From Macrostomum lignano (Eukaryota): a stretch of DNA of 64,000 nt. Both the position numbers and the translations under genes were made by a program. Position 1 is the stretch's first letter. Every line of letters begins with the position of its first letter. Under the pieces are notes generated by a model. The model did no database searches and was not told the origin of the DNA. It saw nothing but the letters and a program-made list of their open reading frames with translations. This document shows positions 10,727 to 62,190 of this stretch, piece by piece. The stretch is from assembly GCA_002269645.1 (NCBI GenBank), contig NIVC01001064.1:1-64000 (forward strand), read 5' to 3'.

Positions 10727-11384
10727 TTTTCAATGATAATATTAAGATTTCATTAATTAATTAATCCCACCAAGGCACAGTGAAGTGTACTCGTATACGT
10801 GCCTAACGATAAGTTAATAGGGCCGCTGAACACTCCTGTGTTGTGAGTGTGTGCCTGTGCGTATGGGCAGTAATGCCTCCTGCCGGTTGGCAGTGGCAAT
10901 ATGTCGCTTAAAGTAAAGTGCACCAAGGTGCACACAGCCCCTGACTCTTATCTAATTAAATTTGAAATGCTGGTTGAGATCATTGAAACAAGCGACAGGC
11001 ATAACCGCGTGCTTTCAACAACAATTTTTGATGAATAATAATCTTTGAAGAAAGAATTTTGCTGCAGGCAATCTCCAGTCGAGAACAGTTCATGAAATGT
11101 TTATTTCCTTTTCCTGTGTTGTAAAAAATCCTGGACAAATCCATGCACAGAGTTCGGAGATTTCTGTCATAATCCAGAGTTCAAGGGGGTCAGTTGCCCT
11201 CACGTTGAAATGCGGGATCACATGTTCCCTAAAAAAATTTTTTTGCCGCGCTAACTTTGACTTTAAAGCAGAACTAAAAATATCTTTGAAAAGTTCCACG
11301 GCCTCTGAAAACCTCCTGTCTTACTACTGAGGGCATGTTGAAGCAAATTCGAGCCTTTTCACATCAATTTTACTCATTTGAGGA

Positions 11385-17137: not shown

Positions 17138-17891
17138 TTAACTCGTTATGATCTGAAATGGCAATAAGGTACGTGTGGCATGGATAGATGACAACATGCC
17201 CTTTGCTCCCTCCTTTACGTCCTTTGCTGCCTTTCTCTTCTGAGCTGGCCGATCAACTGGATCGCACGTGTGCGGAGCAAGGGCTTCTATGGTTCCATCA
17301 GCACGGCGGACTGCGGAGCCATGACAGTGCAGTGATAAACGCTTAGTGCAGCGATAGTACGTGTTGCCATTTCGCCGCGTTTTTTCATCCATCAGATGGC
17401 CAAGGTCTCGTTGGTCTTTTCCGTGACTGCATCCTGCACCTGTAAGAATCTCAAAGGGCTGGGGAGGTGGGCTGCGGGGCGGTGCAAGCTCTGCTGGAGG
17501 AATTTGAATGGATTCTTCCAGAGCTGGATCAGGGTCATTGAAATCTGGATACTGGTAAAGAAAATTTTCTGCTTGTGCCAGAATCAGATGCACTGGTTCT
17601 GGATTTTCAGCAGGCAGAGGAACAGCCGCTGGTCCAGAATTCGGGGCTTGTACATGTACCACTGCAGCATCTGCAGCTTGAGACACTGCTAAGTTACCTG
17701 TAGGAGCCTGTCTATTGCATTGATTGCAAAGCCAGAAAAACTCACCGACATTTCTCATTGCAGAATACTGATCGATTGTGACGCGACTATCACATGCGGT
17801 GCTGCCAATTCAAGCATTGAGAACACTCAATTGCTTCTTGTCCATCGCAAACTGGCTGCAGACAGACCACACATGGATATACGCCTGCCAT
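17138..17891 (-). pseudogene. PHD finger + FLYWCH-type zinc finger gene with a frameshift; probably a Mutator-like transposon remnant
   Basis: ATG at 17891 gives MAGVYPCVVCLQPVCDGQEAIECSQCLNWQHRM then TGA TAG. Restoring 2 nt (ATG[TG]TGAT) joins it to CDSRVTIDQYSAMRNVGEFFWLCNQC, completing a C4HC3 PHD finger, and to ORF 17138-17758 with KTRRNGNTYYRCTKRLSLHCHGSA...HTC (FLYWCH/MULE N-terminal-like). No catalytic DDE domain visible. Confidence 0.7.
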
Positions 17892-25705: not shown

Positions 25706-26085
25706 ATGGCCTCCGGGGACCTCGCTGGCCCAGCCGGCCTCTCCGGTCTCCGCCTGCTGCAGCAGGGCGCCGAGGCGCGCCTGTACGCCGCCGAGTTCTA
25801 CGGCCGCCCTGCCATCGTCAAGGAGCGGTTCGCCAAGCGGTACCGCCACCCGCAGCTGGACGACCACCTGGCCAAGGAGCGGACCAAGAGCGAGGCCAAG
25901 AGCCTCCTGCGCTGCCGCCGGGCCGGCATCCGCGTGCCAGCCGTGTTCCACCTGGACCTCGGCAGCCGGCGCCTCTGCCTGGAGCTGATCGAAGGCGGCC
26001 TCACCGTGCGCGACTTCGTCAACAGGACGATCGGCTGCCCGTCTGTCAGCGCCAGGGATGCCGCGCTGGCTCGGGTGAGACCGGC

Positions 26086-26162
<77 letters not shown>

Positions 26163-26574
26163 GACCATGCAGGAGAGCCCCATCCAAAAGCCATCCCTCC
26201 AACCCGCACCGCAGCTGAGCCTCCAGCTCGGCCAGACCCTGGCCAGCATGCACGCGGCGAATATCGTCCACGGCGACCTGACCACCTCCAACATGCTGCT
26301 TACCCCGGCGCCCGATAGCGGTGCTGAGCTTCCCGACTGGAACAGCCTGGCGATGATCGACTTCGGCCTGTCCTTCGTGTCCGCCGATGTCGAGGACAAG
26401 GCCGTGGACCTGTACGTGCTGGAGCGCGCCTTCATCAGCTCGCATCCCAACACAGAGGCGCAGTTTGCCGCGGTGCTGGACACCTACAGGCGGCTGAGCA
26501 AGCAGGGCAAGATTGTGCTCAGGAAGCTGGATGAGGTGCGAGCCAGGGGCCGGAAGCGGCTCATGATTGGCTGA
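25706..26574 (+). CDS. TP53RK: TP53-regulating kinase / Bud32 (KEOPS complex atypical kinase), 242 aa
   Basis: Exons 25706-26074 and 26215-26574 (intron gtgaga...ccgcag). Motifs QGAEA, IVKERF.KRYRHP, HGDLTTSNM, IDFGL, EDKAVDLYVLERAF and C-terminal RARGRKRLMIG, all typical of Bud32/PRPK. Confidence 0.95.
26086..26164. repeat. (GTCT)n microsatellite in the TP53RK intron
   Basis: Direct reading. Confidence 0.97.
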
Positions 26575-30727: not shown

Positions 30728-33700
30728 TCAGATGGGCTCAGTCTCCCGCACCAGCCATTCGTAGGTCTCGGCAAAGCCTCGCTTTTTCAGCTCGTCGCCA
30801 ACAACCTGCCGGACCTCGGCGTGGTAATTGTTGAGCCAGGCCACGTCCTCGTCAGCGAGCTGACTGCGGTCCACCAGCTTGGTGCTGATGGGCACCAGCG
30901 TCAGCGGCTTGAAGGTGAGGAACTGCAACCCGTCGAATCCTTCGGCTATGCCTGCAAATTTGATGTCAAATGTCGGTCTGTCATGCAGCTTATCCATGAG
31001 GCGAACCACGCCGAGACACCAGCAACTCTACTAAGATACTAATGATCCTACTCAGTCACATCTGATCCTACTCAGTCACATCTGATCCTACTCAGTCACA
31101 TCTGATCCTACTCAGTCACATCTGATCCTGCTCAGTCACATCTGATCCTACTCAGTCACATCTGATCCTACTCAGTCACATCTGATCCTACTCAGTCACA
31201 CTACTCAGGCGCAATGCTAAGCAACTCAGACGCAATGCTAAGCAACTCAGGCGCAATGCTAAGCTACTCAGGCGCAATGATAAGCTACTCAGACGCATTA
31301 TAAGCTACTCAGGCGCAATGATAAGCTACTCAGACGCAATGCTAAGCAACTCAGACGCAATGCTAAGCAACTCAGGCGCAATGCTAAGCTACTCAGGCGC
31401 ATTATAAGCTACTCAGGCGCAATGATAAGCTACTCAGACGCAATGCTAAGCAACTCAGGCGCAATGCTAAGCAACTCAGGCGCAATGCTAAGCTACTCAG
31501 GCGCAATGATAAGCTACTCAGACGCATTATAAGCTACTCAGACGCAATGGTAAGCTACTCAGACGCAATGGTAAGCAACTCAGGCGCAATGCTAAGCTAC
31601 TCAGACGCAATGGTAAGCTACTCAGACGCAATGGTAAGCAACTCAGGCGCAATGCTAAGCAACTCAGACGCAATGCTAAGCAACTCAGGCGCAATGCTAA
31701 GCTACTCAGGCGCAATGATAAGCTACTCAGACGCATTATAAGCTACTCAGACGCAACGATAAGCTACTCAGACGCAATGGTAAGCTACTCAGACGCAATG
31801 GTAAGCTACTCAGACATGCAGTGAGAAGTCCAGCAGCAAACCCTACCCGGCTGGGGCACAACCTCCACGACATTCTCCACCCGGATGCCGTACTGCCCGG
31901 CCAGGTAGAAGCCGGGCTCGATGGTGACAATCATGCCCCGCTTCAGCCCGATCTCGTGCGGATTGGCCCGCGACCCGCTGATAGCGCAGGGCCCCTCGTG
32001 CACGTTGAGGAACACGCCGACCCCGTGCCCGGTGCCGTGCTGGAACTCCAGGCCCGCGGTCCACAGCGCGGCTCTGGCGTGGGTGTCCAGCCGGGAGCCC
32101 AGCACGTTCTCGGGGAAGGTGAGGCGGGAGAGGGCGATGTGGCCCCGCAGCACCAGGGTGTAGTGCCGCTTCAGCTGGGCGCCCGGCGCCGCGCCGTAGA
32201 ACACCGTGCGGGTGACGTCGGTTGTGCCGCACCTGCGGGGATGGGCGATTTATAGAAAACTATAAATTAAAAAAAATAAAAATAGTCAATCTAAATCTCC
32301 ATACTCAATATCATTTTTATGCGGAAATCCCATTCCCACTCACCAGGGAAGTCTCATTTTTCTGATGAAATCTTCTTAATTGAATTCCCGGAATCTCACC
32401 ACAACCCAATATCCCCCTCACGTCGGAAATCTCATCCTGATACCCCAGATTGCATCCTAAAACCGGATCTCAGTCAGATACCCGACATCTCACCTTAAAA
32501 CTGGGAATCTCACCTTAAAACCGGAAATCTCACCCCAAAACCTCAAAATCTCAACTTAAAACCAAAAATATTACCCTAAAACCGGAAATCTCACCCTAAA
32601 ACCTCAAAACTCGCATTAAAACTACAAATTTCACCCTAAAATCGAATATCTCACCCTTATAAAAACAAGCATCTCACCCTTGAACTGAAATCTCACCCTA
32701 AAACCAGAGATCTCACCCAAATACCAGAGATCTCACCCAAATACCAGAGATCTGACCCAAATACCAGAGATCTGACTCAAATACTAGAGACCTCACCAAA
32801 ATACCAGAGATCTCACCCAAATACCAGAGATCTGACCCAAATACTAGAGACCTCACCAAAATACCAGAGATCTCACCCAAATACCAGAGATCTCACCCAA
32901 ATACCAGAGATCTCATCCAAATACCAAAAATCTCACTCTAAAACTGGAAATCTCACCTGTAGTGCCCACCGCTGTCCACCAAGTAGGCTTCGTCGGGGAC
33001 GATCGGCCTGTCGGTCTCCGGCGTGACCCGGTAGTGAATGATAGCCCCATTGGAGCCGGACCCACTGATGGTCTCAAAGCTGATCTCAACGAAGCCCTCC
33101 ATCTCGGAGCGCAGCTGGTCCAGCTGGTTGCTGCCCGACAGCTCGGTGACCGGGGAGCCGGCGGCCAGCTGCAGCTCCAGCCAGTGCAGGTAGCGGCACA
33201 GCGCCACCGCGTCCAGCACGTGAGCCCGGGCCATGCCGGCTCGCTCCGGGGCGTATTTTACCTGGGTGAGGGGTAATTTGGGATTTCATTGATCCACCTG
33301 TCTTCTCATTAATCTACTTGTCCTCTCATTGATCCACCTGTCTTCTCATTGACCCACCTGTCTTCTCATTTATCTACTTGTCTTCTCATTATTCTACTTG
33401 TCTTCTCATTAATCCACCTGTTTTCTCATTGACCCACCTGTCTTCTCATTGATCCCCTTATCCTCTCATTGATCCACTTGTCCTCTCATTGATCCACTTG
33501 TCCTCTCATTGATCCACCTGTCTTCTCATTGATCCACTTGTCCACTCATTGATCCACCTGTCCTCTCATTGATCCACTTGTCCACTCATTGATCCACCTG
33601 TCGTCTGATAGATTTATCTGTCCTCTCATTGATCCACCTGTCCTCTGATTGATCTATCTGTCCTCTCATTGATCCACTTGTCCTCTCATTGATCCACTTG

Positions 33701-36696
33701 TCCTCTCATTGATCCACCTGTCCTCTCATTGATCTATCTGTCCTCTCATTGATCCACCTGTCCTCTGATTAATCTATCTGTCCTCTCATCGATCCACCTG
33801 TCCTCTCATTGATCGACCTGTCCTCTCATTGATATATCTGTCCTCTGATTGATCCACCTGTCCTCTGATTGATCCACCTGTCCTCTGATTGATCTATCTG
33901 TCCTCTGATTGATCTATCTGTCCTCTGATTGATCTATCTGTCCTCTGATTGATCCACCTGTCCTCTCATTGATCCACCTGTCCTCTGATTGATCCACCTG
34001 TCCTCTCATTGATCCACCTGTCCTCTCATTGATCTATCTGTCCTCTCAAGAATTCACCTGTCTTTTCACAGCCCAATCTGCCTTCACTTTGACTCACTTG
34101 TCCTCTCGACCCTTCCCCAACTGAGCTCCCCTAGAAGAGCTAATCAAGACCCATCAATGACGTACCGCTTTCAGCACAGACGCAGGCGAGTCGGCCGTGT
34201 ACACTCGCGCCTTCGGCACCGGCAGTCCCACGGCAGCGCTGGCCCGATGGTCCAGCCAGACCCTGCCGCTGCTGCCGGCAACGAGCTTCTCCAACTCGGA
34301 CTGGAACTTGGCGTAGGCGTGCAGCTGGACGCCGGTCTCGGCCACGTGCTGCTTGAATTCGGCCAGGGCCGACTCGTGCAAGTCGGCGAACAGGTGCGCC
34401 GAGTCGGGCGTGACCGCGGCGTAGGCAAACAGCACGGGTGACATCGGGATGACGCCGACTGCGCGGTAGTTGAACAGCCAGGCTACGTCGTCTAGGGCGG
34501 ACAGGATCAGCAGGCCGGCCTTACACTTCTGCATCTCCTGGCGGAGCTGCAGATGGGGAGGTGGGAGTGCAGGAGAGGAGATGGGAGTGCAGGAGAGGAG
34601 ATGGGAGTGCAGGAGAGGAGGTGGGAGTGCAGGAGAGGAGGCGGGAGTGCAGGAGAGGAGGTGGGAGTGCAGGAGAGGAGGTGGGAGTGCAGGAGAGGAG
34701 GTGGGAGTGCAGGAGAGGAGGTGGGAGTGCAGGAGAGGAAGTGAGAGTGAAGGAGAGGAAGTGAGAGTGAAGGAGAGGAGGTGAGAGTGAAGAAGAGGAA
34801 GTGAGAGTGAAGGAGAGGAGGTGAGAGTGAAAGAGAGGAAGTGAGAGTGCAGAAGAATAGGTGGGAGCGCAGAAGGTGGGAGAGGTGGGGGAGATAAAGG
34901 CAAAGGAGCCGAGAGGAGAAAAGAAGAGAAAGCAAAAGCCAAGAGACAGCAGAACACAGTAAGAAATCGCTTCCAGCAGACGGACTCAGCCGAACTCACC
35001 AGCGCGAGCTTCTCAGCCGGTCCGGCCCCGGCCTCCTCGGCAGTGAGCAGGAACAGCCGCCTGCCCAGCGGCCTCTCAGGTCGGCCGGTCCACACGGCGT
35101 CTACCAGATTGTCCGGCAGGCCGACCAGCTCGGTGCCGCCCGCGGCCAGGCTGTCCCGCATCTCAATGAACCGGCCGAAAGGCAGCGTTGTCGGGTCGAA
35201 GCCAACCCGGGCGAACCCCCGGTTGGCCAGGTACTCCGTGAGGGTCGGCACGTCCTTGGCGAGGGCGCGCATCAGCGTCCAGTTGGAGTCCATCTGCTGC
35301 TCGGCTTGAAGGAAATAGCGCCCGTCTGTCCACATCAGCGCCTCGGACTGCGGGGTGGGTGACAGAGTTCCGGCTTCCGCCCCTTCACTCTCTTCAGCTT
35401 CCGCCCCTTCATTCTCCTCGGCAAATCCGCCCCTTAATTCTCCTCTGCTTCCACCCCTTCATTCTCCTCGGTAAATCCGCCCCTTAATTCTCCTCTGCTT
35501 CCGCCCCTTTCACTCTCTTCGGCTTCCGCCCCTTCACTCTCTTCGGCTTCCGCCCCTTCACTCTCTTCTGCTTCCGCCCCTTCACTCTCTTCGGCTTCCG
35601 CCCCTTCGATCTCTTCGGCTTCCGCCCCCTCACTCTCTTCGGCTTCCGCCCCTTCACTCTCTTCGGCTTCCGCCCCTTCACTCTCTTCGGCTTCCGCCCC
35701 TTCACTCTCTTCTGCTTCCGCCCCTTCACTCTCTTCGGCTTCCGCCCCTTCACTCTCTTCGGCTTCCGCCCCTTCACTCTCCTCGGTTTCCGCCCCTTCA
35801 TTCTCCTCGGTTTCCGCCCCTTCATTCTCCTCGGTTTCCGCCCATTCACTCTCCTCGGTTTCCGCCCCTTCATTCTCCTCGGTTTTCGCCCCTTCACTCT
35901 CCTCGGTATCCGCCCCTTCATTCTCCTCGGTTTCCGCCCATTCACTCTCCTCGGTTTCCGCCCCTTCATTCTCCTCGGTTTTCGCCCCTTCACTCTCCTC
36001 GGCTTCCGCCCCTTCACTCTCCTCGGTTTCCGCCCCTTCATTCTCCTCGGTTTCCGCCCCTTCATTCTCCTCGGTTTTCGCCCCTTCACTCTCCTCGGTA
36101 TCCGCCCCTTCATTCTCCTCGGTTTCCGCCCATTCACTCTCCTCGGTTTCCGCCCCTTCATTCTCCTCGGTTTTCGCCCCTTCACTCTCCTCTGTATCCG
36201 CCCCTTCATTCTCCTCGGTTTCCGCCCCTTCATTCTCCTCGGTTTTCGCCCCTTTACTCTCCTCGGTTTCCGCCCATTCACTCTCCTCGGTTTCCGCCCC
36301 TTCACTCTCCTCGGTTTCCGCCCCTTCACTCTCCTCGGTTTCCGCCCCTTCATTCTCCTCTGCTTCCGAACCTTCATTCTTCCTGATTTCTGCCCTTCAT
36401 CCTCCTGGCCAGAAATTTACTTTTAATTCTCAAGTATCTGGACTCTCACGAGACAATATGTATCGAAAAAAACATCAGCAGCAGACCATTGCCAAAACTG
36501 ATGGATATCTCACCTCGGTGACAAGGGCGGTGCCGGCACTGCCAGTGAAGCCGGTCAGCTGAGCCCGCCTCTTGTCGCAGTCGGCCACGTACTCGGACAT
36601 GTGCGCGTCCTCAGAGGGCACCAGATAGGCGTTGAGCTGGTGCCGGGACATGAGCTGGCGCAGGGCCTTCAGTATGTCTGCTGTGCAGCGCTTCAT
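30728..36696 (-). CDS. XPNPEP1: Xaa-Pro aminopeptidase 1 (aminopeptidase P, M24B), 608 aa
   Basis: Exons 36514-36696, 35000-35347, 34166-34546, 32957-33261, 31847-32232, 30728-30951 (1827 nt, phases consistent, all GT-AG). Motifs DAHMSEYV, GFTGSAGT, WTDGRYFLQA, LVDSGGHY, GTTDVTRT, HGTGHGVG, TIEPGFY, GIRVEN (metal ligands D,D,H,E,E present). No signal peptide, consistent with the cytosolic form. Confidence 0.95.
31045..31815. repeat. Two abutting minisatellites in XPNPEP1 intron 5: 20 bp (GATCCTACTCAGTCACATCT) then 21 bp (ACTCAGGCGCAATGCTAAGCT)
   Basis: Periods 20 and 21 measured; switch near 31200; both share CTACTCAG. Confidence 0.93.
32480..32950. repeat. 20 bp minisatellite (ATACCAGAGATCTCACCCAA) in XPNPEP1 intron 4
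   Basis: Degenerate at 32480-32700, homogeneous at 32700-32930. Confidence 0.9.
33290..34100. repeat. 20 bp minisatellite (GATCCACCTGTCCTCTCATT) in XPNPEP1 intron 3
   Basis: About 38 copies. Confidence 0.95.
34555..34870. repeat. 20 bp minisatellite (GGGAGTGCAGGAGAGGAGGT) in XPNPEP1 intron 2
   Basis: Period 20 measured. Confidence 0.93.
35370..36380. repeat. 24 bp minisatellite (TTCCGCCCCTTCACTCTCCTCGGT) in XPNPEP1 intron 1
   Basis: Period 24 measured (35641/35665); about 40 copies; source of the spurious 297 aa KGRKPRR ORF. Confidence 0.96.
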
Positions 36697-38417: not shown

Positions 38418-40913
38418 CTAAGACACCCGGTCCCGCAGCTCTGCATAATCCAGCAAGCTCTGGTAGAGCATCTCGGACTCATCCTGGCTGCCAGATATCG
38501 GCTCGACGCCCATGTAGGGCCGTCCCAGCAGACCGGTCCGGCTGAAGTACTTGCAGTCTGGCCGCAGGCGCTCGCCAGGATGTGCCACCTGCGCCAGCGC
38601 GTGCACCCCGTTCTCCGCGGTCAGGTTGTAGCTGGTCACCAGCAAGCGAAGCAGGCACAGCAGCGGCCAGGCCAGGTACCAGAACCACAGCGACACGATG
38701 CCTTCAGCCAGGTTGGTGACCACCAGGCCCGGGTCCACCGGGCAGAACTGCACACCGGCAGGCTGGTAGCGCCGGTTGAGGTGCAGGCACAGCAGGTCGA
38801 TGGCGTGCTTGCCAGCGGCGTAGGGCGCCATGGAGTGGCGGCACTCGGGGTCGGACAGCTTGAAGTGACGGCGCGACGCGTTGCAGGATGAAGTCCACAC
38901 AACTCGACTGGCCTGTTGCGGGTTGTCAGGGCGATTCTTGGAGATTTAGGGCGATCTAAATGGGCGATTCTTGGGGAGATTCATGGCGATCTAAATGGGC
39001 GATTCTTGGAGAGATTCATGGCGATCTAAATGGGCGATTCTTGGGGAGATTCAGGGGCGATCTTGATGGGCGATTCTTTGGAAGATTCAGGGGCGATGGT
39101 AAAGGGCGATTCTTGGGGAAATTTAGGGGCGATTCTTGGGGAGATTCAGGGCGATTCTTGGGGAAATTTAGAGGCGATTCTTGGGGAGATTTAAGGCGAG
39201 CTTAATTGGCGATTCTGTGGAGATTCAAGGCCTATTTAATTTTGATTCAGATGGTTCAAACGGGATTCTCAAACACAGGTACAGAGACAATTCCCAGGAA
39301 GTTCTCAGGCTCCGGCCCCTGTTCTCACCTGACCCGTTGCGGAATGCCGACCAAGAGGCGATGGCGCGCCATCAGGCGGATGCAGCAGCCCCATGGTGAG
39401 CAGGAAGTGGCCGCCAACGTTAGTCTTAAAGACGCCCCGCCTGCCGTCCTGGCAGTCAAAGTCGGCCTGCACGAGAACGCCCAGGCCTGTGGTGAGCATG
39501 GACCAGGCCTCCCGGCTGATGAAATTACGGATCAGATAAAACCAATCGACTCGGCTGACCAGCAGAATGCCGGCATTCAGGTAGAGCATATCTATTCGCT
39601 TGTACCTGCGGGTTAGGAAGACTCTTGCGGCCTGGGTTTACTGGAATTTGAGTACTTGGACCCTACCTAGTACCTCCGATTATAACACTTATGGCAGTAG
39701 AATTACTGAGTAGCTAAATACCTGTACTCTTGATAATACAGACAGTACAAAAAAGCCATATATAAAGTGCACTCAAAACAGAAAGTACAAACAAGGTCCT
39801 GCTCAAGTACACTCAAAACACAGAAAATACAGTCATACTTGAAGTGCACTCAAAACACAGAAAAAGTGCAAACAAAGCCATATTTAAAGTACACTAAAAC
39901 ACAGAAAGTACAAAGGAATACTTAAAGTACAATCAAAACACACAGAACGTACAAACAAAGGGGTACTTAAAGTGCACTCAAAACACAGAAAGTGCAACAA
40001 AGCCATAAAGTGCAATCAAAACACAGAAATTACAGTTATGCTTTAAGTACACTACAAACACAGATAGTCATACCTAAAGTACACTCAAAACACAGAGAAA
40101 GTACATACAGTCATACTTGAAGTGCACTTAAAACACAGAGAAAGTACAAAGTCATACCTAAAGTACACTCAAAACACAGAGAAAGTACATGCAGTCATAC
40201 TTGAAGTGCACTCAAAACACAGAGAAAGTACATACAGTCATACTTGAAGTGCACTCAAAACACAGAGAAAGTACAAAGTCATACCTAAAGTACACTCAAA
40301 ACACAGAGAAAGTACATGCAGTCATACTTGAAGTGCACTCAAAACACAGAGAAAGTACATACAGTCATACTTGAAGTGCACTCAAAACACAGAGAAAGTA
40401 CAAAGTCATACCTAAAGTACACTCAAAACTCAGAAAGTGCAACAAAGCTACACTAGAACTGCAGAGCACAAACGCAGCACACTAACTAAAAACACAGATA
40501 GGGAAAACCGAAGTACAGCACAATCTACAATTCATAACTTAAGCACCAAAAGTACAAAGTGCAAAAATAGCCAACCGATTAAGTAGCCACTGCGTGCAAT
40601 CGCGAACAGAATCGAAATCGCTGGTGTCCAGTTTGCACAGGTCAATGCGACACCAAGAAGAATCTGATGTTAAATTTCTACCACTAGAAGCAGAATTAAA
40701 AGCAGCCGCAGCCAAACTGCGCAGCGACTCCGCGGCAGCTCGAGCTGCTTGCAAATTTCTGCAGCACAGACACAGAGTCAGCTGTGGCGGCTTCTCCAGG
40801 GCTGAGGAGGCAGATTCGCTGGCTGCATCAGCGATCAGCTTGCGGGCAAGGCAGAACCCGATGCCCCTATTGGCACCAGTGATGACAATCACCCGCCCGT
40901 CTGAGCTGCCCAT
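38418..40913 (-). CDS. HSD17B7: 3-keto-steroid reductase / 17-beta-HSD7-like short-chain dehydrogenase, 369 aa
   Basis: Exons 40576-40913, 39329-39605, 38418-38912 (1110 nt, phases consistent). Motifs VITGANRGIG (Rossmann), LCCRN, IDMLYLNAG, VFKTNVGGH, VVWTSS, catalytic PYAAGK, PGLVVTNL and a C-terminal hydrophobic segment, as in HSD17B7/ERG27-type SDRs. Confidence 0.8.
38930..39215. repeat. ~21-22 bp minisatellite (GGGCGATTCTTGGGGAGATTCA) in HSD17B7 intron 2
   Basis: Direct reading. Confidence 0.9.
39745..40500. repeat. ~41-44 bp minisatellite (GTCATACTTGAAGTGCACTCAAAACACAGAGAAAGTACA...) in HSD17B7 intron 1
   Basis: GTCATAC recurs at 41-44 nt spacing. Confidence 0.9.
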
Positions 40914-44118: not shown

Positions 44119-47100
44119 CAGTGGCGTATCCAAGGGGGGGGGATGGGGGGGATACATCCCCCCCGAAGGGCTGAAGAAAAAAAATTTAGGTAATGAATTT
44201 TTTACACTTTTGCTTATTTTATCAGTGACTGGAGTGACGGGAGCCTGCCTGCCAAGTGCCACTGCCAGTAAATGTACGAGCAGATTACAGAATAGTGAGA
44301 ATACAGATGGCATAATGAGATTTGAAAAGACCCTTGCCCTTCATTTAGAGTTAAGTTCCTCAACTCTAAGTTCCTTGCCGGGGGGAGGGGCAAGGGGACG
44401 GGCGGGGGAGGGTTGAAGGAAGGAAGCTAGCTATTTTTCAATTCCTGCCCTGTCTTATAGATTATATGTACTATCATACTATGTATGTACATTAACATTT
44501 CCTTCCAATCTGTGGGCTAGCTTAGCTGTGGTTAACATGTTTTAAAGGCCCTGCCCCAGCCCAGGCCTAGCACAAACCACGAATTAAAAAGCTAACCAAT
44601 ATGGCTTCACCTCCAAGCAAACAACTGAAGCTTGATCAGTTCTTTAGAGCTTGTACTCCTCCGGCTCCTATGCAGCAACAACAATTACAAAACGAGGACC
44701 AACATCAATCAGCTCCTGTTCCTGAAGAGATTATTCTCAATGACGACAATGACAGTGACTGCCATCCTAATAGTGACACTGACAGTACTAATAGAAGTTC
44801 TACTTCTGCGACTGCAACTGCAGAACCTCAATGCCAAGACCTACCAGCACAACCACCAGCAGCAGCAGCTATAGAGCCTACAGCTACAGGATTAGCTGGA
44901 ATTGCCTCTCGTGATATTGATGATGCTGTACAACTGCGCATCCAAGGCAAGCTGACTGCCGAAATTCGACGGCTCTTCATGAAAGAAACATTAAAGGTTT
45001 CTGTGGAATACGAGCTACCTTTCACAGAGGGAGCAAAGCAGAAATTTAGACTGAATCACCATCACCTTAATGGGGCAAACAGCTGCTTCTACTTTTCGCC
45101 AAGGAAACAAGGTGTTTACTGCCTGCCGTGTGTTCTTTTTGCACCATCGACTGGCGCAGGCCAGAAGAACAATCAAGAGTTAGGCAGACTGGTCACTATT
45201 CCAGTTACTAACTTTAAGAAGATCACTGACTTCTACTCTAAGCATCGAGACTGCCAGTACCATGCGCAAGCATGTGACGCATTCCAAAAAGTTCTGCAGC
45301 AAGAAGAATCTGGTGATATATCGGCGCAGCTAAAGACAACTGCCCATGCAGCTCTTCAGGACAACAGGTACATCTTCAAGGCTGTTCTACATGCTATTGA
45401 GTACCTTGGTCGCACAAACCAGGGTCTTCGTAGCCATCGAGAAGATGTTGGGTGGCTTAGGCTTCCAGATGCACCCGAACTTGTTGATTACACACAAGGT
45501 AATCTACGTGCCCTTTTGCAGAGAGATGCTCTAAAGGATAGCAAGCTGGCTACACTGCTCCAAAATAGGCCTTTAAACTCTACTGGTCTGTCACCTGTTG
45601 TACAGAACAGGATGATTGAGTGTATTGAAGCTGTAGTTATTCATGACGTAGTTAAGCCAATCAAGTCATTCTACGCCATAATTGCTGATGGAACTAGCGA
45701 TATATCCCATAAGGAGCAGCTGTCGATTAACATACGCTATGTTGACGAAAGTGGAAATGTCCAAGAACGCTTTATTGGTTTCGTTGAACTCAAGAAGCAA
45801 GATTCAGTGGCAATTGTCGATGCCATTAACCAGAAGCTCGATATTCTTCAGCTTGACAAAGATCGGCTTGTTGCCCAAGGCTATGATGGTGCCTCTGTCA
45901 TGAGTGCTGAAGGAGGAGTTCAGGGCCGGATACGAAGAACTTGTCCAAATGCAGTCTATGTACATTGCTTCAGTCACTGCCTGAACCTGTGCATTAAGGC
46001 TGCAGTGGATGGCCGGCACGGCATTCGAGAACTCAAGGCTGCATTTGCAACAATTGATGCTGCATCAAATCACTTCTCACATTCTTCCGTAAGAACGCAG
46101 CAATTTTCTGAAGTTGTGGCAAGAAGTCAGAATAACTCAACAAACAAAACACGACTAAAGCGGTTCTGTCCCACGCACTTCATTGATGGCCTGGATAGTG
46201 TGTTTAACTTTCTCGAACTCTTTGATGCAGCAGTAGAGTACTTCAATGATGCTGACCAGTCAGTGTACAATAACATTGTCAATCCGGTGACAATTGTGGC
46301 ACTGCACGTTCTTCAGGCCTTGCTTGGTGCAATACGCGGTCTTGCAGTTGTGCTTCAGGTAAGAGGCACCTACAACAAATGCAATAAAAATATAATTTTA
46401 CAGATAAAATACATGTATGTGCTATGTGTATCAATAACAATATCAAATATAAAGTACTGGTTTCCTCACCTATCAATATCTAGCTTATATAATACCAGTA
46501 TGTATGGTGTATATTTTACATGAGAGTGTTGATTACGTAGTAGCAGTACATAACATGTACATATTTGAGGTACTTACAATGGTATATTCAAGGTACAGCA
46601 AACAAGCAAATACTAAATTATATATGCTTTGTCTATGCATCTTTATTTCAGGGAAAGGCAATGGATCTTATTGCTGCCAGTGAGGAGGCCGATCGCATTC
46701 TCCATCTCTTGAAGGCTTGGCGTAGTGACTGTGAAGATGCCAAATTCAAGGAAGTCTTTGCCGCAGCTGAGGAACTTCACAAGAAGCACCACGGAGATCA
46801 GCCAATTCCAGATAAGTATCGGGCATCAGCATCCCATCGCAGCCAACATCGTAGCAATGCCCAAGGCGCTAGTGTTTCTGATACATTCAAGCTGAACATC
46901 TGGTATCCAGCCCTTGATCTAATAATTATTGAACTCAGCGAGTGCTTTTCTAAGTCGGCCAAGGTTGCCATGCAAATGGCAAAGCTGCTACTGGCTTTTT
47001 GTGCAGGCCCTGACTCAGCTGAGTCTACTCTAGCAGCAGCCAAAGCATTCGAGGAGTATGCGGCATTTTTAGATATGCCTGCAGTTTGCCTGGCAGAATT

Positions 47101-47968
47101 CGAATGCTGGCAAGCATTCTGCTGCGATTTGCCAGAAACTGAGCGAAATGATATGACCATCTCACAAGCAATCAAGCGGTGCAATCCTAGCTTGTGGCCA
47201 AATGTCTGCAAACTGCTGACAATCTTCCTTACGACTCCAGTCACAACATGCACTGCTGAAAGGTCATTCAGCACCTTGCGCCTTCTGAAGACGTATACCC
47301 GATCAACCATGGGCGAACGCCGGCTTAATGGACTTGCCCTACTGGCTGTTCACAAAGATATCCTGCTTGACTACAATCGAGTAGTCGAGGAGTACTCACG
47401 GAGGTTTGACCCGCGGCTCCGTCTACTTTAAGCCATGGACTCAATGACTCATAATCATGCAAAAGTAATGTAATATTGTAATTTAAATTTAAATTTTACT
47501 AAAAATTTTCTAACTTGCCATCTTGTATCAATCATATTTCTATTTTTTAATTTCTATGGCCTATTGTACTACTTGTTATTTCTGATTTACATGTACATGT
47601 AAACGTAAAATTGTAGTGGTGAATGTCTGGTGAATTATTCATACTCATAGTTTAATACTTAATAGTTTATCCAAATTATTATCCTACTTATCCAAGTTTG
47701 AATTTGCTTATCTGATTAGCTAATTAACTGGAATAGAATGCATAGCTGGTCGACTTTTTACACGCTCAATAAAATAAACAATGATTGATGTTGATGTCTC
47801 ATCCTTAGTAGCAACATTTAATTGAGTTAAACTTGGAGAGGTCCGGTCCTCATCAATTTTGTTTTATACGAGTACAATAAGGATAAAAGAAAAACGAAAA
47901 TAGAGTGCAATCGTTTTCAAAAGTACTTTTGCATCCCCCCCCGAAACAAAATCCTGGTTACGCGCCTG
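44119..47968 (+). mobile_element. Full-length hAT superfamily DNA transposon, 3850 bp
   Basis: Perfect 8 bp TSD CTCTTTTG at 44111-44118 and 47969-47976; imperfect TIRs CAGTGGCGTATCCAAG / (rc) CAGGCGCGTAACCAGG, both followed by subterminal G-run-GAT motifs; encloses a spliced transposase. Confidence 0.93.
44601..47431 (+). CDS. hAT transposase (ZMYM1/PRKRIR-like; TTF zinc finger, DDE core, hATC dimerisation domain), 845 aa
   Basis: Exons 44601-46358 and 46652-47431 (cag|gtaaga ... tttcag|G, phase 0), no stops. Motifs YCLPCVLF, IIADGTSDIS, GYDGASVM, VHCFSHCLNL, TTPVTTCTAERSFSTLRLLKTYTRSTMGERRLNGLALLAVH. Confidence 0.9.
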
Positions 47969-54320: not shown

Positions 54321-55176
54321 GCCTTTTAAATTTTCCCTAGTTAAATAATTTTGAGCGAGGTGTCGAACGGCTACACTGCAGAACTGCAGAATTTTAGTAT
54401 AGTGGATGTGATGTGCCTATCCATATATACGAAAAATGGTCTGTCGGTAAGTATGTGGGTATGTGATCGATTTTAGTGCCTATCCGAGCTATAGCAATTG
54501 CATATGAATAGACCAAATATGCGTACTTTCACTACAACAGCAACAGTTCATTTATCTGTTAAGTACGCCCTACTGTTTACACTGAGCAGATAATGCAAAA
54601 TCTTTAAATATCTTCAAACTTAGTAGTCTAGTGCACTAAAAGTAGTAAGATAGAAATACGCAAAATAAAAAGTAGAATTATTCATCAAGTAAACAGTATG
54701 AAACAAATCTAATTTCGGTTATGCATGCAACATCTAATCAGTGAATGCTAGAATGCCTGCTGGTTCTCAACATCTATTTTAGAATTATATAAAGGTAAAC
54801 ATTAAACTGACATTGACTCTAAATTTCCAGAAGTTTTCCTAATTTCCTTTTACAAAACCCCACCGGTCAAGTGTTAAGGTTAAAACCATGATCAAAAGAA
54901 ACCAGTAGGACCTAAGGTCAAGCCTAAATTTTTTATAAATACAATATAATCCGAGCTAACATATCAGACTGTGATCAGTCCCTTAAAGAAGACATTACAA
55001 TACATCGCTGAATAACGATATCATATGTTGCCTAAAAGTTGGTGTAATGTAAAAGTACATATTTGTCAACTACTGTTATCTATATATATGCGGGTGCACG
55101 TCAAAACGGCCACACGTAAAACGGCCTCACGACGTCTAATACGTCTAATATGCGTCTAATACGAGCGTACGTCTGT

Positions 55177-56523
55177 TTCGTTTGGCGCCACCTCACCGAA
55201 AAGCACGCGGTTCATCACTCTGGCGACCTCAGTGGCCACGCAGTGGATCCGCAGCGCCTCGGTGGGCACCTCGTCCGGACCAAGCGCTTTGCCGCCCGGC
55301 GTCTGCCGAGCGAACTTCACAACGTCGGCTGTGCTGACTGGGGCAACATTGAAGCTCTCCTCCGCCGGCAACGGCGTCTCCGGCGGCAGCCTCAGATTTT
55401 CTGGAAGCGGAGGGGGCGGCGCGTTGACAATGGCGGCGAAGAACTCGCGCAGCTCGTTCCTGCGCTCATCCGGAGTGTCGCCTGCCAGGTTGAGCGCAAT
55501 GCGCCGCTTTCGCCCCGTCAGAGTGTTGATGGCGGACCAGGCCACGCGCCCTCTGGCATCGGGCCCTGCGGCAGAGACGGCTTGGATGGCGTCATCGACA
55601 GCGGACTGCTGCCGCTGCAGGTAGACAGCCGCCAGAGCCTCCTCCGCCTCGCGAGTTGGCCGCCCACTCAGACGAAGCCTCTCCAGATCTTCCCTCGCTT
55701 CGTCGATCGCGGGGTCGTCCTGCCAGACCGGCTGCCCGCGCTGGGCCGGTCGCATCAGCGGGACTGCTTGCTCCGCAGCGGCTCGAACTGCAGCGCTCAC
55801 CTCCGCGTACTCGGCTCCTCCACGCTTGTCGCCCAGCGCAGTGACAAAGGCACCGGCAAAGCGACGTCGCGTCTCGGCGTCTCTGAGCGCGCGGTAGTAG
55901 CGCCGCGGTGGCCGCTTTGGCGGACGGTAGAGCGGGTCCCGAAGCCGAAGGTCGCAGATGAGCAGCCGATGGTCGGACCGCAGAGCCAGCGGCGTAATGG
56001 TGTGGCAGTTGGTGGCGCGGCGGCGCTCACGAAAGCGCACAAGCACGTGGTCGAGCTGTGCCAGCCTCCGCGTAGCGTTCCGGCCACGCGCGTTCCGCCG
56101 CCTCCGCTTGCAGCCCACGAAGGTCGCGAGCCTGCCCGGCGACTTGCGGAATCTGGTGTTGGCCGACACCATGTCCTGTCTCTCCAGGAAGTCCTCTAGC
56201 GCTCCGGTGTTGCCGTTCTCGCGCGCTGTCACAAACAGCGATCGCTCGGACCTACGCAGAACTGCGTTCAGGTCTCCGAGAATGACCACTGTGTCACGTT
56301 GCGCCATCTCCTCCACCCGCACCGAGAGTTGCTCGAAGAAGGCCTGAGCCTCATCGGAGCGGGTAGCAGGCGGCGCATACGCGCAGAACAGGCGGGTGTT
56401 CCGGCCGCGAAGCCGGACGTCGACCCGAAGCAGCCGAGAAGACAGGGAGATGCAGCGACAGCTCTGCTGCAGCCTCGGTCCGATCAGCGCTCCAACTCCT
56501 CCACGGCCTCGCTCATCCGCTGA
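55177..56523 (-). CDS. LINE ORF, inverted part: apurinic endonuclease domain + linker (N-terminus missing)
   Basis: Open frame from SADERGRGGVG through VILGDLNA, QLDHVLV, RSDHRLL and GKALGPDEVP to LFGEVAPNE. Confidence 0.9.
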
Positions 56524-57877
56524 GGCGCCAAACGAATGGACCACGGCGCACATCGTCGCCATTCCAAAGAAGCCGGGCACCACCAAGCTCGAGGAGCATC
56601 GAGGCATCTGCCTACAGTCCTGCGCCGCGAAGCTGTTCAACCGCATGCTGCTATCGCGGTTACAGCCTGTGCTGGACCCGTACCTGCGTCCTGAGCAGAA
56701 CGGATTCCGGCCCCATCGCGGCACAGTGACGCAGATCCTGGCTCTTCGACGAGTCATCGAGGAGGCGCGCATCCGCCAGTTGACCCTGATCCTGATCTTC
56801 GTCGATTTCAGGAAGGCTTTCGACTCGGTCGTGAGGGACGCGCTCCCAGAGGTGCTCCGTGCGTACAACGTGCCAGAGCTGCTGATTTCTGCTGTCATGG
56901 CGCTGTACCACGGCACGACGGCTGCTGTCTCAACACCGGACGGCCTATCGGATTTCTTCGAGACATCCTCCGGGGTGCTCCAGGGAGATACGCTAGCGCC
57001 GTTCCTATTTATTCTGGTGCTTGACTGGGTGCTACGGACTGCTCTGCCTTCCAACGACGACGGCTTCCTGCTGCGGCGACGCGTGGGTCGACGCCAACCG
57101 GAGAGACGGCTCAGCGTGCTTGGCTACGCCGATGACCTCGCCCTGCTGTCCTCGACCGTCGAGGGCGCCCAACGACAGCTGGATAGGCTGGTTGCCGTTG
57201 CGGCGAGCGTCGGCCTGGTGGTCAACACGCAGAAGACCGTCGTGCTATGCGTGCCGGACGACACCGAGGCTGCAATCTTCTGCCGAGGCGCTGACGGACA
57301 GGCGAGTGAGCTTCCAAGATGTCAGCAGTTCGTCTACCTCGGCGGTCTGGTTCCCGACGTCCGCGAGGATCTGCGGCGTCGCCGAGGACTTGCTTGGGCT
57401 GCCTTTCGTTCTATAAGGTCAGTCCTGCAGTCCGAGGCCCTACCGGACCGCCAGAGGGCGGCGCTGTTCCAGGCGGTGATCGAGACCGTCCTGTTATACA
57501 ACGCCGAGACCTGGACGCTGACAGACTCGCTCGAGGCTCAAGTCGACGCGGCGCACGCTGGCCTGCTGCGCGCCGCCTTCAAGATCGGCAACGAGCGAGT
57601 CACCAACACGGCGCTCTATCATCGCGCCGGCCTGGCCCGTCCTAGCGATCTGCTGCGCCGTCGGCGACTCCAGCTGGCAGGCCACGTCATCCGCGCCGAG
57701 GCCTACTGTCCGGAGCCGGTGCAGGAGGTGCTGCTACTTACGTTGCAGGCACCCTACCGGCGGGGACAGGCGAGGACTCGGCGCTACGTCGACTGTCTGC
57801 TGGCTGACGCCGGCGCCCCGGACTCTGCCGGCGGTGCGGCTTTTGTTCGCGCCCAAGCTTTGAAGCGCGCCATCTGA
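56524..57877 (+). CDS. LINE ORF, non-inverted part: reverse transcriptase and C-terminus
   Basis: Open frame APNEWTTAHIVAIPKK, HRGICLQS, QNGFRPHRG, FVDFRKAFDSV, GVLQGDTLAPFLF, LGYADDL, FVYLG, LLYNAETWTL, to stop at 57875-57877. Confidence 0.93.
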
Positions 57878-58392: not shown

Positions 58393-59434
<1,042 letters not shown>

Positions 59435-60404
59435 GTTTCGATAGCGAATTTTTCAGCTGCTAGCACTTTCTGCACTGGAAATCGAGTCCCAAAATCCTCA
59501 GGTAACGATAGCAATTAGAGTGTTTAATATTCGAGTGAATTAGAGTTGAATAGCGGAGGTCGGAGGACAGTCTCAGCATTCTCATCGCAGATGACTGGAA
59601 CAGAAACCATTTTAAACTATGTAATTATATAATTATGTTATACTCTTGACTACCGTTTCGGACTTTAATTTTTTTAAATGCGTAATTAACAAACAGACTT
59701 TAATTGAAATTGATTAGAATAACCATGACATCTTTGAAAATAAAAGCGAGAAGGTTGTATAGCAGCCGTATAGAATTGAGTGCGCTTGATAGGGAAGAAA
59801 ACCCACGTATCATCTGCCACGTATCGATCGAAATAGGGTGGGTGAAGGTAGGATCACTTTTACGATGCTTTTTTGTGCAAAATCTTGCCTGGACTGGACC
59901 TGAGATTTGCAGCCTCATTTCTGTATGGTCTGCGTGTGCACTAGCGGCCTTGCCGAGTTAAGGCTGAGGTACGCAAGGTGAGGGTTGACTCGAGAGAAAA
60001 TTTTCCTGAGCACTCTGTCCCCACGACTCTCTTCCGCGTACACCGGCCGAGTCGTGCCAAGACGTGCTCAAAAGCCTTACTCTCACTCCTACTCCAATGT
60101 ACACCTATCTGCAAGTGAAGGACTCCGACTTTAGGCCTTGAGTTCTGATATTTCGCACATCCCGTTTCCTCTCTAAGTACATCTAGTCGAGCCTATAGTA
60201 ATCGGTCAGTATATAGTAGTTTCGCTCTGTTTTCCTGATGCACTCTTGCACCACCAGTGCTTGAAGTGATTATTTCGTTAACTTTGGTTTCAAGTCTACA
60301 GATTCGGGTCCTGGTTCTGGTTCTAGTCCTAATCCGAGTGAATCTTGAGAAAAGCGTATGGGGCAGTTTAATAATTCAATTGTAGGTCTCAAAAGCACAT
60401 CACA

Positions 60405-61589
60405 TCAGCCCACGTTAGCAGCCCTGACTCGCAGCCGCATCTGCGGGTCGATGTACACCTCGTCCAGCTGCCTGGATAGCGTGTTGTGCTCGCACATCCA
60501 CTCGCCCTGACTCCTCTCGTAGCGCAGCCTGCGGGCCGCCAGAGCCGACATCCGGTAGAACGACACGCCCTGGAAGCAGCTCTCCACCTTCACCGGCGGC
60601 AGGCTGCGCGGCGCGTCCCGAAGCGACTTCTCGTAGCTGACCACAGGGTACTTGGTGTCCTCGCCGAAGCGCTTGTTCAGGTGGAAGCTCAGCGTGCACG
60701 CGTCGTAGAGGTGGCTGTCCTGAGTAGTGTGGGCGCACAGCTGCTGCAGCTTGGGCTTGGCCGCAAAGTAGTAGAGTCCCTGGGCGATTCTGTCTAGATC
60801 CCAGTCCTGCCAGGTGATGTCCGGGTCGATGATCAGCAGGAGCGATACCCGGTCGGCCAGGTGCTCGTAGATGTAGTCCAGGTACAGGTTGCGGAGGGCG
60901 GACATGGCCAGGCCGCGCTCGACCTCCTCGGTAAAGTTCCGCTTTATGTAGGAGCCGGGCACGTGCCGTCGCCCGCTGCTGTAGCGGATGTCGATGCGGC
61001 ACGGCAGCGGGGAGTTGACCCGGCCGCAGCCCAGCAGCCGCACATTCGGGTCGGTCAGCGTCGTGTTGTACAGAAAGCTTCGAGTCGAGTCCGTCGAGTC
61101 GTTCTCAACCAACACCAGCCAGGACTCGTTGAACAGAGCTCTGAGGCGCTGGACATTGTGCATGGAGCTCGGCAGGCCGGCCATGCCGTTGCGCACGGTG
61201 GCTGCCACCATCACCGACTGGCTGCGGAGCCACGCCCTGCCGGCCACCACCCGGTGCGAGCGGCTCCTCTCGGCTTCGGAGAGCCGCATGAGCGGCAGCA
61301 GCCGGCCCGGTCGGTCGAAGCGGTACAGCGACTCACGCATGCGGCGGACGAGACGCCCGTATTGCTCTTGAAAGGCCCTATCGCTCTGGTTTATGCCAAA
61401 GTCAGTGCCGGCAGAGAGTGGCGCGTGAGGCGCTTTGAAACCTTTAAAACTGAAGGCTGCTGACTGAACACAGATTAGCAGTAAGACGAATGCGACACCA
61501 GCTGCCGCACTAACTGTTAGGAACAGGTAGAAGATTTTCGATCGAGGACCAACGCTCCTGCAGTTTTTCAATGAAAATCCGCAGTTCAT
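60405..61589 (-). CDS. Intronless type II membrane GT-A glycosyltransferase-like protein (CAP59/GT69- or microbial GT2-like), 394 aa
   Basis: Likely ATG at 61589 (ATAAAAATG). N-terminal TM segment IFYLFLTVSAAAGVAFVLLLICV, then motifs VAATVRN, LVENDSTDST, SALRNLYLDYI, LIIDPDI (DxD), HLYD, VESCFQG, CEH, YIDPQM; several N-glycosylation sequons. Family assignment is from recalled motifs. Confidence 0.75.
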   Translation of the reverse strand: MNCGFSLKNCRSVGPRSKIFYLFLTVSAAAGVAFVLLLICVQSAAFSFKGFKAPHAPLSAGTDFGINQSDRAFQEQYGRLVRRMRESLYRFDRPGRLLPLMRLSEAERSRSHRVVAGRAWLRSQSVMVAATVRNGMAGLPSSMHNVQRLRALFNESWLVLVENDSTDSTRSFLYNTTLTDPNVRLLGCGRVNSPLPCRIDIRYSSGRRHVPGSYIKRNFTEEVERGLAMSALRNLYLDYIYEHLADRVSLLLIIDPDITWQDWDLDRIAQGLYYFAAKPKLQQLCAHTTQDSHLYDACTLSFHLNKRFGEDTKYPVVSYEKSLRDAPRSLPPVKVESCFQGVSFYRMSALAARRLRYERSQGEWMCEHNTLSRQLDEVYIDPQMRLRVRAANVG

Positions 61590-61904
61590 TTTTATGGCCG
61601 AACGGCTTTTTGCTGAAAACTTTCGATATTGTCTTTCTCTGGATAGAAATTTCAATAAAGTTGATAGTGAAGCGAGCACATCACACTGTCGGACTCCAGT
61701 GTCTTTCAACACTCGTTTTTTCTCTCAACAGATGGAATGATTCCAAATTTAGAAACAAATTTTCTTGCCCCTCCGCCAATGGGATTTCGTGCAGCCAGTT
61801 CAAAGTGCAGCGGGGAGGGGTTGCTGCTGTGCGAGCATGAGCACCTGCATCCTCCTCGAAAAAGCGGAGGACAGTATAAGCAGGACAGTTTGCTGTCCTC
61901 AGAC

Positions 61905-62190
61905 CACTGTCTTTGAGTTGCAGTCCTCGAGTCGCAGTCCTCGAGTCGCTGTCTTTGAGTTGCAGTCCTCGAGTCGCAGACCTCGAGTCGCAGTCCTCGA
62001 GTCGCTGTCTTTGAGTTGCAGTCCTTGAGTCGCAGTCCTCGAGTCGCTGTCTTCGAGTCGCTGTGCTCGAGTCACCGTGCTCGAGTCGCTGTCCTCAAGT
62101 CGCTGTGTTTGAGTTGCTGTCCTTGAGTCGCTGTGCTGGAGTCGCTGTGCTTGAGTCGTTGTCCTCAGGTCGCTGTATTCGAATCACTGA
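61905..62190. repeat. 14 bp minisatellite (GTCGCTGTCCTCGA) upstream of the glycosyltransferase
   Basis: About 20 degenerate copies. Confidence 0.88.

Follow-up and report, generated by a model that had tools for sequence, protein, structure and literature searches.

An intact PF11735-like glycosyltransferase gene of the flatworm Macrostomum lignano and its plausible origin by an old horizontal acquisition

We analyzed a 64,000-nucleotide stretch of DNA from the flatworm Macrostomum lignano (contig NIVC01001064.1 of assembly GCA_002269645.1, positions 1 to 64,000; hereafter the window), the minus strand of which carries a glycosyltransferase gene at 60405..61589. An earlier note, made from the sequence letters, had described this gene as a microbial or viral-type enzyme and a candidate for horizontal transfer. 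We conclude that the open reading frame (ORF) is intact and real, a functional gene of its Macrostomum-type flatworm host, and that an old horizontal acquisition is plausible. The coding sequence runs from an ATG (61589-61587) to a TGA (60407-60405), and its 1185 nt encode 394 amino acids with no intron and no internal stop, just as it had first been read. Upstream of this ATG the frame is open as far as a GTG at 61712; ATG 61589 is the first ATG, and the M. lignano paralogues start at the equivalent position in an alignment. The window holds one copy of the gene; a second copy was considered and rejected. The gene, the parts of its product and the signals around it are as follows:

60405..61589, minus strand: complete, single-exon coding sequence of the glycosyltransferase, 394 codons plus TGA, from the ORF reading.
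61536..61589, minus strand: N-terminal tail, residues 1-18, with the four basic residues K8, R11, R16 and K18, from the sequence.
61467..61535, minus strand: single transmembrane segment, residues ~19-41, a type II signal-anchor by hydropathy and the helix of the AlphaFold2 model.
61218..61466, minus strand: stem, residues ~42-124, from the alignment, with low model confidence.
60426..61217, minus strand: GT-A catalytic domain, PF11735-like, residues ~125-388, from Pfam (127-367), AlphaFold2 and Foldseek.
61083..61106, minus strand: ENDSTDST motif, residues 162-169, after strand beta-2, from the family alignment.
60819..60827, minus strand: DxD motif, D255-P-D257, from the family alignment, directly after strand 250-254 of the model.
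60486..60494, minus strand: C366-E367-H368 motif, invariant in the family alignment.
61639..61645, minus strand: acceptor-like TATCCAG, ending 49 nt before the ATG, from the sequence reading.
61613..61619, minus strand: second acceptor-like site, TTTTCAG, more pyrimidine-rich, 23 nt before the ATG, from the sequence reading.
60367..60372, minus strand: ATTAAA, a hexamer resembling a polyadenylation signal, 33-38 nt past the stop, with a presumed role.

The TATCCAG lies exactly where it had been reported (61645-61639), and may be an acceptor for trans-splicing or for an intron in the 5'-untranslated region. The codon usage of the gene is fully ameliorated to the host style: its GC content at third codon positions (GC3) is 0.82, close to the GC-rich style claimed for it earlier, compared with 0.86-0.94 in the host exon pieces of the window. 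The immediate flanks have a GC content of 0.43-0.46. Repeats lie on either side of the gene. Downstream, at a distance of about 1 kb, is a near-perfect (GTTA)n microsatellite (x260, 58393-59434); upstream, about 320 nt from the ATG, is a tandem array of 19 copies of a 14-bp unit with 80% matches (61907-62176).

Every motif of the string listed in the earlier note is present in the 394-residue protein. In addition to the ENDSTDST, DxD and CEH motifs, these are VRN (132-134), LRNLYL (232-237), YD (295-296), SCFQG (337-341) and IDPQM (380-384). In a conservation alignment of 150 family sequences, eight columns are invariant (E162, S165, R233, D257, D296, C366, E367 and H368) and 21 more are conserved at 90% or above, including R133, N163, D167, T169, R170, D255 and C197. 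The window protein keeps all 8 invariant and all 21 nearly invariant residues. Because the motifs coincide with these columns, they are not a chance string.

To place the fold, we used an AlphaFold2 model built on 19 sequences, with a mean pLDDT (predicted local distance difference test) score of 78 and values mostly >90 in the catalytic core. A Foldseek comparison with the PDB returned 198 matches at E<=0.001, and the best 50 were all GT-A transferases at probability 1.0. By this model, the fold of the catalytic domain is GT-A, the fold on which the earlier proposal depended. Among the matches are the archaeal mannosyltransferase PcManGT (6yv7), Listeria RmlT (8bz6), human COLGALT1 (9evj), ArnC, TarS and hyaluronan synthases. 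With the GT2-type enzymes PcManGT, RmlT, ArnC and TarS and the GT25 enzyme COLGALT1, the flatworm protein shares the GT-A fold (E ~1e-7), an acidic-Ser-x-Asp loop after beta-2 and the DxD motif. In contrast, sequence identity to these enzymes is 8-17% and TM-scores are 0.25-0.45, and only the PF11735-like family has the C-terminal half with its SCF-G and CEH motifs.

The sole Pfam match of the protein is PF11735 (CAP59_mtransfer), with an E-value of 4.9e-6 and 26.8 bits, spanning profile positions 3-232 of 242 and residues 127-367. The score falls below the Pfam gathering cut-off of 28.8 bits, and we therefore call the protein PF11735-like or GT69-related rather than a member of GT69. The resemblance to CAP59/CMT1 suggested earlier is thus borne out as the only Pfam match, at a score short of the curated threshold. 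A search of NCBIfam gave no match, and a sequence search of the PDB gave nothing significant, only chance matches to phage Gam at E ~0.8. The earlier remark that the protein is not a standard vertebrate glycosyltransferase holds in that no standard animal glycosyltransferase family was matched; the comparison with vertebrates is moot for a flatworm host.

The N-terminal architecture agrees with the short tail, transmembrane helix and stem described before: a single hydrophobic segment follows a basic tail. The only Kyte-Doolittle peak >1.6 in the protein comes from windows starting at residues 17-33, and the AlphaFold model has an N-terminal helix at residues 15-47. By the positive-inside rule, the tail (residues 1-18) is predicted to be cytosolic. 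The predicted lumenal side holds six cysteines and five glycosylation sequons (N67, N154, N163, N175 and N218), in line with the sequons noted earlier. Together, the N-terminal segment after the basic tail, the modelled helix, the sequons and the lumenal cysteines predict a membrane protein of the secretory pathway. The second half of the stem is kept among the flatworm paralogues in the alignment.

Roles can be proposed for several of the conserved residues. The ENDSxDxT loop is the likely nucleotide-binding loop of the model, the counterpart of the acidic-Ser-Thr-Asp loop in GT2-type enzymes. D255-x-D257 is predicted to be a ligand of the metal and the diphosphate, and H368 may serve as a third metal ligand; another fungal mannosyltransferase is described as combining a DXD motif with a His (PMC12493134). 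For localization, metal, donor and acceptor, we infer the following. The protein would be a type II membrane enzyme of the endoplasmic reticulum (ER) or Golgi: a short tail in the cytosol, a single helix as signal-anchor, a stem about 80 residues long and, in the lumen, the GT-A domain. A nucleotide-sugar would be bound in the ER/Golgi lumen via the beta-1 and ENDSxDxT loops and via D255-x-D257 with a divalent cation, probably with the help of H368, and the sugar would then be passed to a glycoprotein or glycolipid acceptor of the secretory pathway. The only characterized relatives, the fungal GT69 enzymes Cmt1, Cap59 and ClpA, would suggest GDP-mannose as the donor and an alpha linkage. The analogy is weak at this distance: with only 26.8 bits to the PF11735 profile, donor and linkage are not transferable with confidence. 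The surface, mucus or adhesive glycan proposed in the earlier note as the product is a conjecture.

The fungal GT69/PF11735 enzymes (Cryptococcus Cmt1, Cap59 and Cap6, Aspergillus ClpA and Neurospora GT69-2) are like the flatworm protein in the collinear match to the PF11735 profile, in a DxD-type motif and in being membrane proteins of the secretory pathway whose GT-A-type domain faces the lumen, as predicted for the flatworm protein. Neurospora GT69-2 is localized to the Golgi (PMC8092235), and the characterized PF11735 enzymes are Golgi GDP-mannose alpha-1,3-mannosyltransferases acting on capsule precursors or on glycosylphosphatidylinositol (GPI) anchors (PMC8092235, PMC12493134). Unlike them, the flatworm protein scores below the profile cut-off, and its clade is marked by a distinct stem and by ~12-14 inserted residues; GDP-mannose alpha-1,3 activity is known for the fungal enzymes only.

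The window gene has close relatives in its own genome. The protein collection contains no entry identical to the window protein, which is therefore not part of the annotated M. lignano gene set. Its best match is the M. lignano 'hypothetical protein' P0001 (E 1.6e-188; 75% identity over the full length and 87% in the catalytic part), and further M. lignano matches are P0002, P0003, P0004, P0006, P0007 and P0011; all M. lignano proteins of the family carry the annotation 'hypothetical protein'. They form at least seven paralogue clusters with 44-87% identity in the catalytic part. At the DNA level the window gene is 92% identical to the P0001 gene, in the catalytic part only, and the flanks differ; the window gene is therefore a further paralogue. 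The genes of P0001 and P0002 are single-exon. The gene of P0004 has one GT-AG intron of 674 nt (L054 10682-11355), the only one observed in the family, which consists almost entirely of a 22-bp minisatellite. We therefore rejected the idea that the family always lacks introns, and with at least seven clusters and one intron-bearing paralogue, the view of the gene as a lone acquisition fails as well. Two gene models stand apart: the C-terminal end of P0003 diverges from the family and has no CEH motif, as would be expected of a frameshifted or misannotated copy, and P0008, a 646-residue 'RING-type E3' model whose last ~190 residues are a glycosyltransferase domain of the family, is probably a fused gene model. 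Literature searches that covered these M. lignano genes, Macrostomum together with horizontal gene transfer or giant viruses, and GT69 in animals turned up no paper on this family.

The pattern of divergence indicates that the catalytic domain is under constraint. Pairwise ratios of nonsynonymous to synonymous divergence (dN/dS) between paralogues, computed over the catalytic domain, are 0.19-0.52, a sign of purifying selection that is somewhat relaxed between the two closest paralogues. The comparison of the window gene with the P0001 gene (L001 10001-11191) is mosaic: dS is 0.15 in the catalytic part, the first 100 codons have a dS of ~1.0 and a dN of ~0.49, and DNA similarity ends where the catalytic part starts. 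This suggests gene conversion or an exchange of the 5' part between paralogues. More broadly, the divergent tails and stems of the paralogues suggest diversified localization or partners around a constrained catalytic core.

The glycosyltransferase gene is integrated in the host genome: spliced animal genes and animal transposons share the 64-kb window with it. The claim that other host genes here are spliced is true for those checked, an M24 aminopeptidase and a Bud32-like kinase, both of which are split into separate ORF pieces; the transposon ORFs of the window are unspliced as well. Scaffolds of 439-533 kb in an independent M. lignano assembly carry paralogues beside tubulin and cyclophilin genes.

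To find relatives outside flatworms, we searched 1.84 billion representatives exhaustively with a profile of the flatworm sequences plus two distant members. This returned 3328 representatives at E<=1e-3 and 218 at E<=1e-30, of which the best 150 were inspected, without taxon labels; many of the best-scoring relatives are unlabelled metagenome proteins. A protein search with the 150-sequence alignment, to which a word pre-filter applied, gave 17 matches. Nearly all of the closer metagenome relatives have a precomputed PF11735 match. Among 19 relatives, 15 match PF11735 at E<=0.01 (best 8.9e-9), and five also match PF00535 weakly. Scans of JGI metagenomes and IMG/VR with the flatworm-plus-sister alignment found nothing above 31% identity; two long scan matches that resembled intron-bearing genes were rejected as tandem gene pairs.

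The best-scoring non-flatworm relatives with known context are, as judged by profile scores, giant-virus genes. With a flatworm-only profile, viral and viral-like proteins score 123-148 bits, the copies of a second animal (described below) 74-96 and Bacteroidota proteins 52-61. In IMG/VR, 23 giant-virus loci encode homologues, including metagenome-assembled giant-virus genomes and isolate genomes of 346-380 kb, which we take to fit Marseilleviridae. In the BFVD, the best structural match is the Marseillevirus LCMAC102 glycosyltransferase A0A481YUL9 (E 2e-22, 25% identity), followed by proteins of Sylvanvirus and then of ChoanoV1, a choanoflagellate virus. The closest metagenome relatives are found on compact contigs that also have viral hallmark genes. 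P0029 and P0187 form a tandem pair, and their neighbors encode a SWIB protein and a ribonucleotide reductase with an intein. The 481-kb contig of P0199 also encodes Rpb10, patatin, kinases and LicD, and the P0015 cluster occupies a compact 52-kb contig with FtsJ, AAA, RING, GT32 and GT25 genes and a Fapy glycosylase. On virus-like metagenome contigs of 24-28% GC (L049 7376-9474; L058; L070), two copies of the gene often lie side by side in tandem. The metagenome relatives P0016, P0035, P0060 and P0126 have DUF4214-like repeat arrays in place of the N-terminal anchor; DUF4214 is a Pfam match in one family member, and a ChoanoV1 DUF4214 protein is among the BFVD structural matches.

The giant-virus PF11735-like enzymes have the same order of short tail, N-terminal transmembrane segment and catalytic domain as the flatworm protein, and they have all the invariant residues. 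The earlier note had supposed that a Golgi-style anchor was fitted to the enzyme after its transfer. This is contradicted by the relatives: an N-terminal anchor followed by the catalytic domain was found in 19 of 19 viral ORFs inspected and also in the second animal's copies. What sets the viral proteins apart is an identity of 22-31%, a length of ~300-340 residues and a GC3 of 0.15-0.68, from genes that are AT-rich or of moderate GC, compared with 0.82 for the flatworm gene; these viral enzymes are uncharacterized. Compared with most viral relatives, the flatworm proteins have a stem that is longer by 30-55 residues. An insert of ~12-14 residues between the ENDS and LRN motifs, absent from most viral proteins, marks the flatworm sequences: the ENDS-LRN spacing is 68-70 residues in flatworms, 66 in the metagenome protein P0059, which shares part of the insert, and has a median of 56 in 206 others.

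Two further groups of relatives were found. The first, in line with the bacterial relatives expected earlier alongside those in giant viruses, is a more distant, chromosomal subfamily in the Bacteroidota (Daejeonella, Pedobacter, Sphingobacterium and Flavobacterium), detected in a scan of bacterial genomes for which the query was the alignment of the Bacteroidota subgroup only. These proteins have no N-terminal anchor and a hydrophobic C-terminus instead, and they are without the conserved cysteine pair after the ENDS motif. The second is an AT-rich (33% GC) animal genome that is common in metagenomes (contigs L002-L004) and has family copies including P0009 and P0013. The L002 copy (10001-11047) is intronless. 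It has a USP9X orthologue, which scores 1246 bits against human USP9X, on one side and a PARN-like gene on the other, and a liprin-alpha-like gene is close by; L002 is classed as animal from these neighboring genes only. Besides M. lignano and L002, no animal protein was present among the matches with readable source names, and no broad clade of metazoan orthologues was seen among them.

To place the flatworm sequences, we built neighbor-joining trees from Kimura distances with 100 bootstraps, for 204 and 241 sequences and 251-255 catalytic-domain columns. The flatworm clade was monophyletic in 100 of 100 replicates, and the flatworm and second animal's copies were grouped in none of the 100. 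By sequence comparison, the flatworm clade is an expanded, flatworm-specific group within a large PF11735-like family; most of the family members whose context is known are giant-virus genes. Because the trees are based on distances only and contained no fungal GT69 sequences, they are weak evidence on placement, and they fix neither the donor nor the direction of transfer. The horizontal transfer proposed in the earlier note therefore stands as a plausible old acquisition.

Taking these observations together, we lean towards a single, old event in which an ancestor of the macrostomids took up the gene from the giant-virus/protist pool, and after which the gene was domesticated and multiplied. 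After such an acquisition, the gene would have undergone codon amelioration, duplication, extension of the stem and, in at least one copy, intron gain. A more specific version is that a gene of the giant-virus pool was captured by an ancestor of Macrostomum, domesticated and expanded to at least seven paralogues that make a flatworm-specific secretory glycan; this we offer tentatively, as possible and on balance doubtful. A parallel comes from other animals, such as bdelloid rotifers, in which carbohydrate-active genes of foreign origin are known. As in those cases, the flatworm gene is an intronless enzyme gene of patchy distribution that sits among ordinary animal genes, and the same is true of the L002 copy. 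Unlike those genes, this one would have come from the pool of giant viruses or protists and not from bacteria or fungi, and its paralogue family is sizeable.

Several observations weigh against an acquisition from the giant-virus pool. The sister of the flatworm clade is a single 312-residue metagenome protein, P0059, with bootstrap values of 48-59 out of 100, and nodes deeper than the flatworm/P0059 split are without support in these distance trees. P0059 itself (L057 210-1148) is encoded on a 1342-nt scaffold with a GC content of 0.37, with one other gene 56 nt away on the opposite strand. Relatives ranked below the best 150, including more distant animal and eukaryotic members and the fungal GT69 enzymes proper, lie outside the tree. 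Identity to any non-flatworm sequence reaches at most ~31%, with a clear gap after the flatworm sequences, and the event, if there was one, must therefore be very old, with long-branch effects likely. The same side of the balance holds the sub-threshold PF11735 score, the presence of a family copy in the second animal genome and the N-terminal signal-anchor throughout the family: the latter is a eukaryotic secretory feature and fits a eukaryotic origin with viruses as the recipients.

The main alternative is that the gene is ancient, eukaryotic and vertically inherited: the family would have existed in early eukaryotes or animals, most animals would have lost it, macrostomids and a few other animals would have kept and expanded it, and giant viruses would have taken their copies from protist hosts. 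Such a history would be in line with the eukaryote-style type II anchor and conserved lumenal cysteines of the whole family, with the copy in the second animal and with the long flatworm branch of unsupported placement; the fungal GT69 enzymes, moreover, are a bona fide eukaryotic branch (PMC8092235). It nevertheless appears unlikely to us. The two animal groups never came together in the bootstrap replicates, and the flatworm profile scores viral sequences above the copy of the second animal. No further animal protein appeared among the matches with readable names. The coding sequence is intronless in both animal lineages whereas the neighboring genes are split, and many independent losses would be required. 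A direct transfer of a Bacteroidota-type enzyme from bacteria, with the N-terminal anchor gained afterwards, is very improbable: a well-populated Bacteroidota subfamily exists, but its members are the group most distant from the flatworm profile (52-61 versus 123-148 bits for viral-type proteins) and differ in both anchor and cysteine pair, as described above. Finally, that the ORF is a contaminant, mis-assembled foreign DNA or a decaying, functionless pseudogene is barely credible, since the intronless coding sequence, the repeats on both flanks and the lack of an exact match in the protein collection, which could be read that way, are set against spliced animal genes and animal transposons in the same window, paralogues on long scaffolds of an independent assembly, a host-like GC3, an intact frame with all catalytic-type residues kept and a dN/dS below 1.

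The window as a whole is clearly animal DNA, and its other features are as follows. Host gene pieces lie at 25706-26574, 31806-35335, 38418-38900 and 17138-17758. The Bud32/TP53RK-like kinase gene has a tetranucleotide repeat in an intron, the M24 aminopeptidase-P-like gene has a low-complexity Ser/Pro/Leu insert inside one ORF piece, and the remaining pieces are a fragment of an SDR gene and an ORF with a weak resemblance to FLYWCH zinc fingers. A hAT-superfamily transposase at 44601-47431 is made up of two consecutive plus-strand ORFs, one of 640 residues with DUF4371 and one of 288 residues with a hAT dimerization domain; its GC3 of 0.38-0.46 is unlike that of host exons. At 55156-57877 lies the remnant of a retroelement of the LINE (long interspersed nuclear element) type, with an RVT_1 reverse-transcriptase ORF on the plus strand (56396-57877) and, antisense to it, a 632-residue ORF on the minus strand (55156-57054) with no Pfam match.

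Animal glycans are thought to be built by a fairly fixed, vertically inherited set of glycosyltransferases. To our knowledge, the PF11735/GT69-like family has so far been studied only in fungi, in the context of capsule, GPI-anchor and cell-wall biology. The finding is not categorically new, in that other animals are known to have carbohydrate-active enzymes of horizontal origin, and ordinary GT-A chemistry is to be expected of this one. An intact, expanded and apparently selected GT69-like family in a regenerative model flatworm would nonetheless represent an unrecognized enzyme class for animal glycobiology. If its affinity to giant-virus genes is true, it would point to an exchange of genes between a bilaterian and the giant-virus/protist pool; and if capture and domestication took place, this would be one of the few documented examples of a giant-virus-type gene family at work in the glycosylation machinery of a bilaterian.

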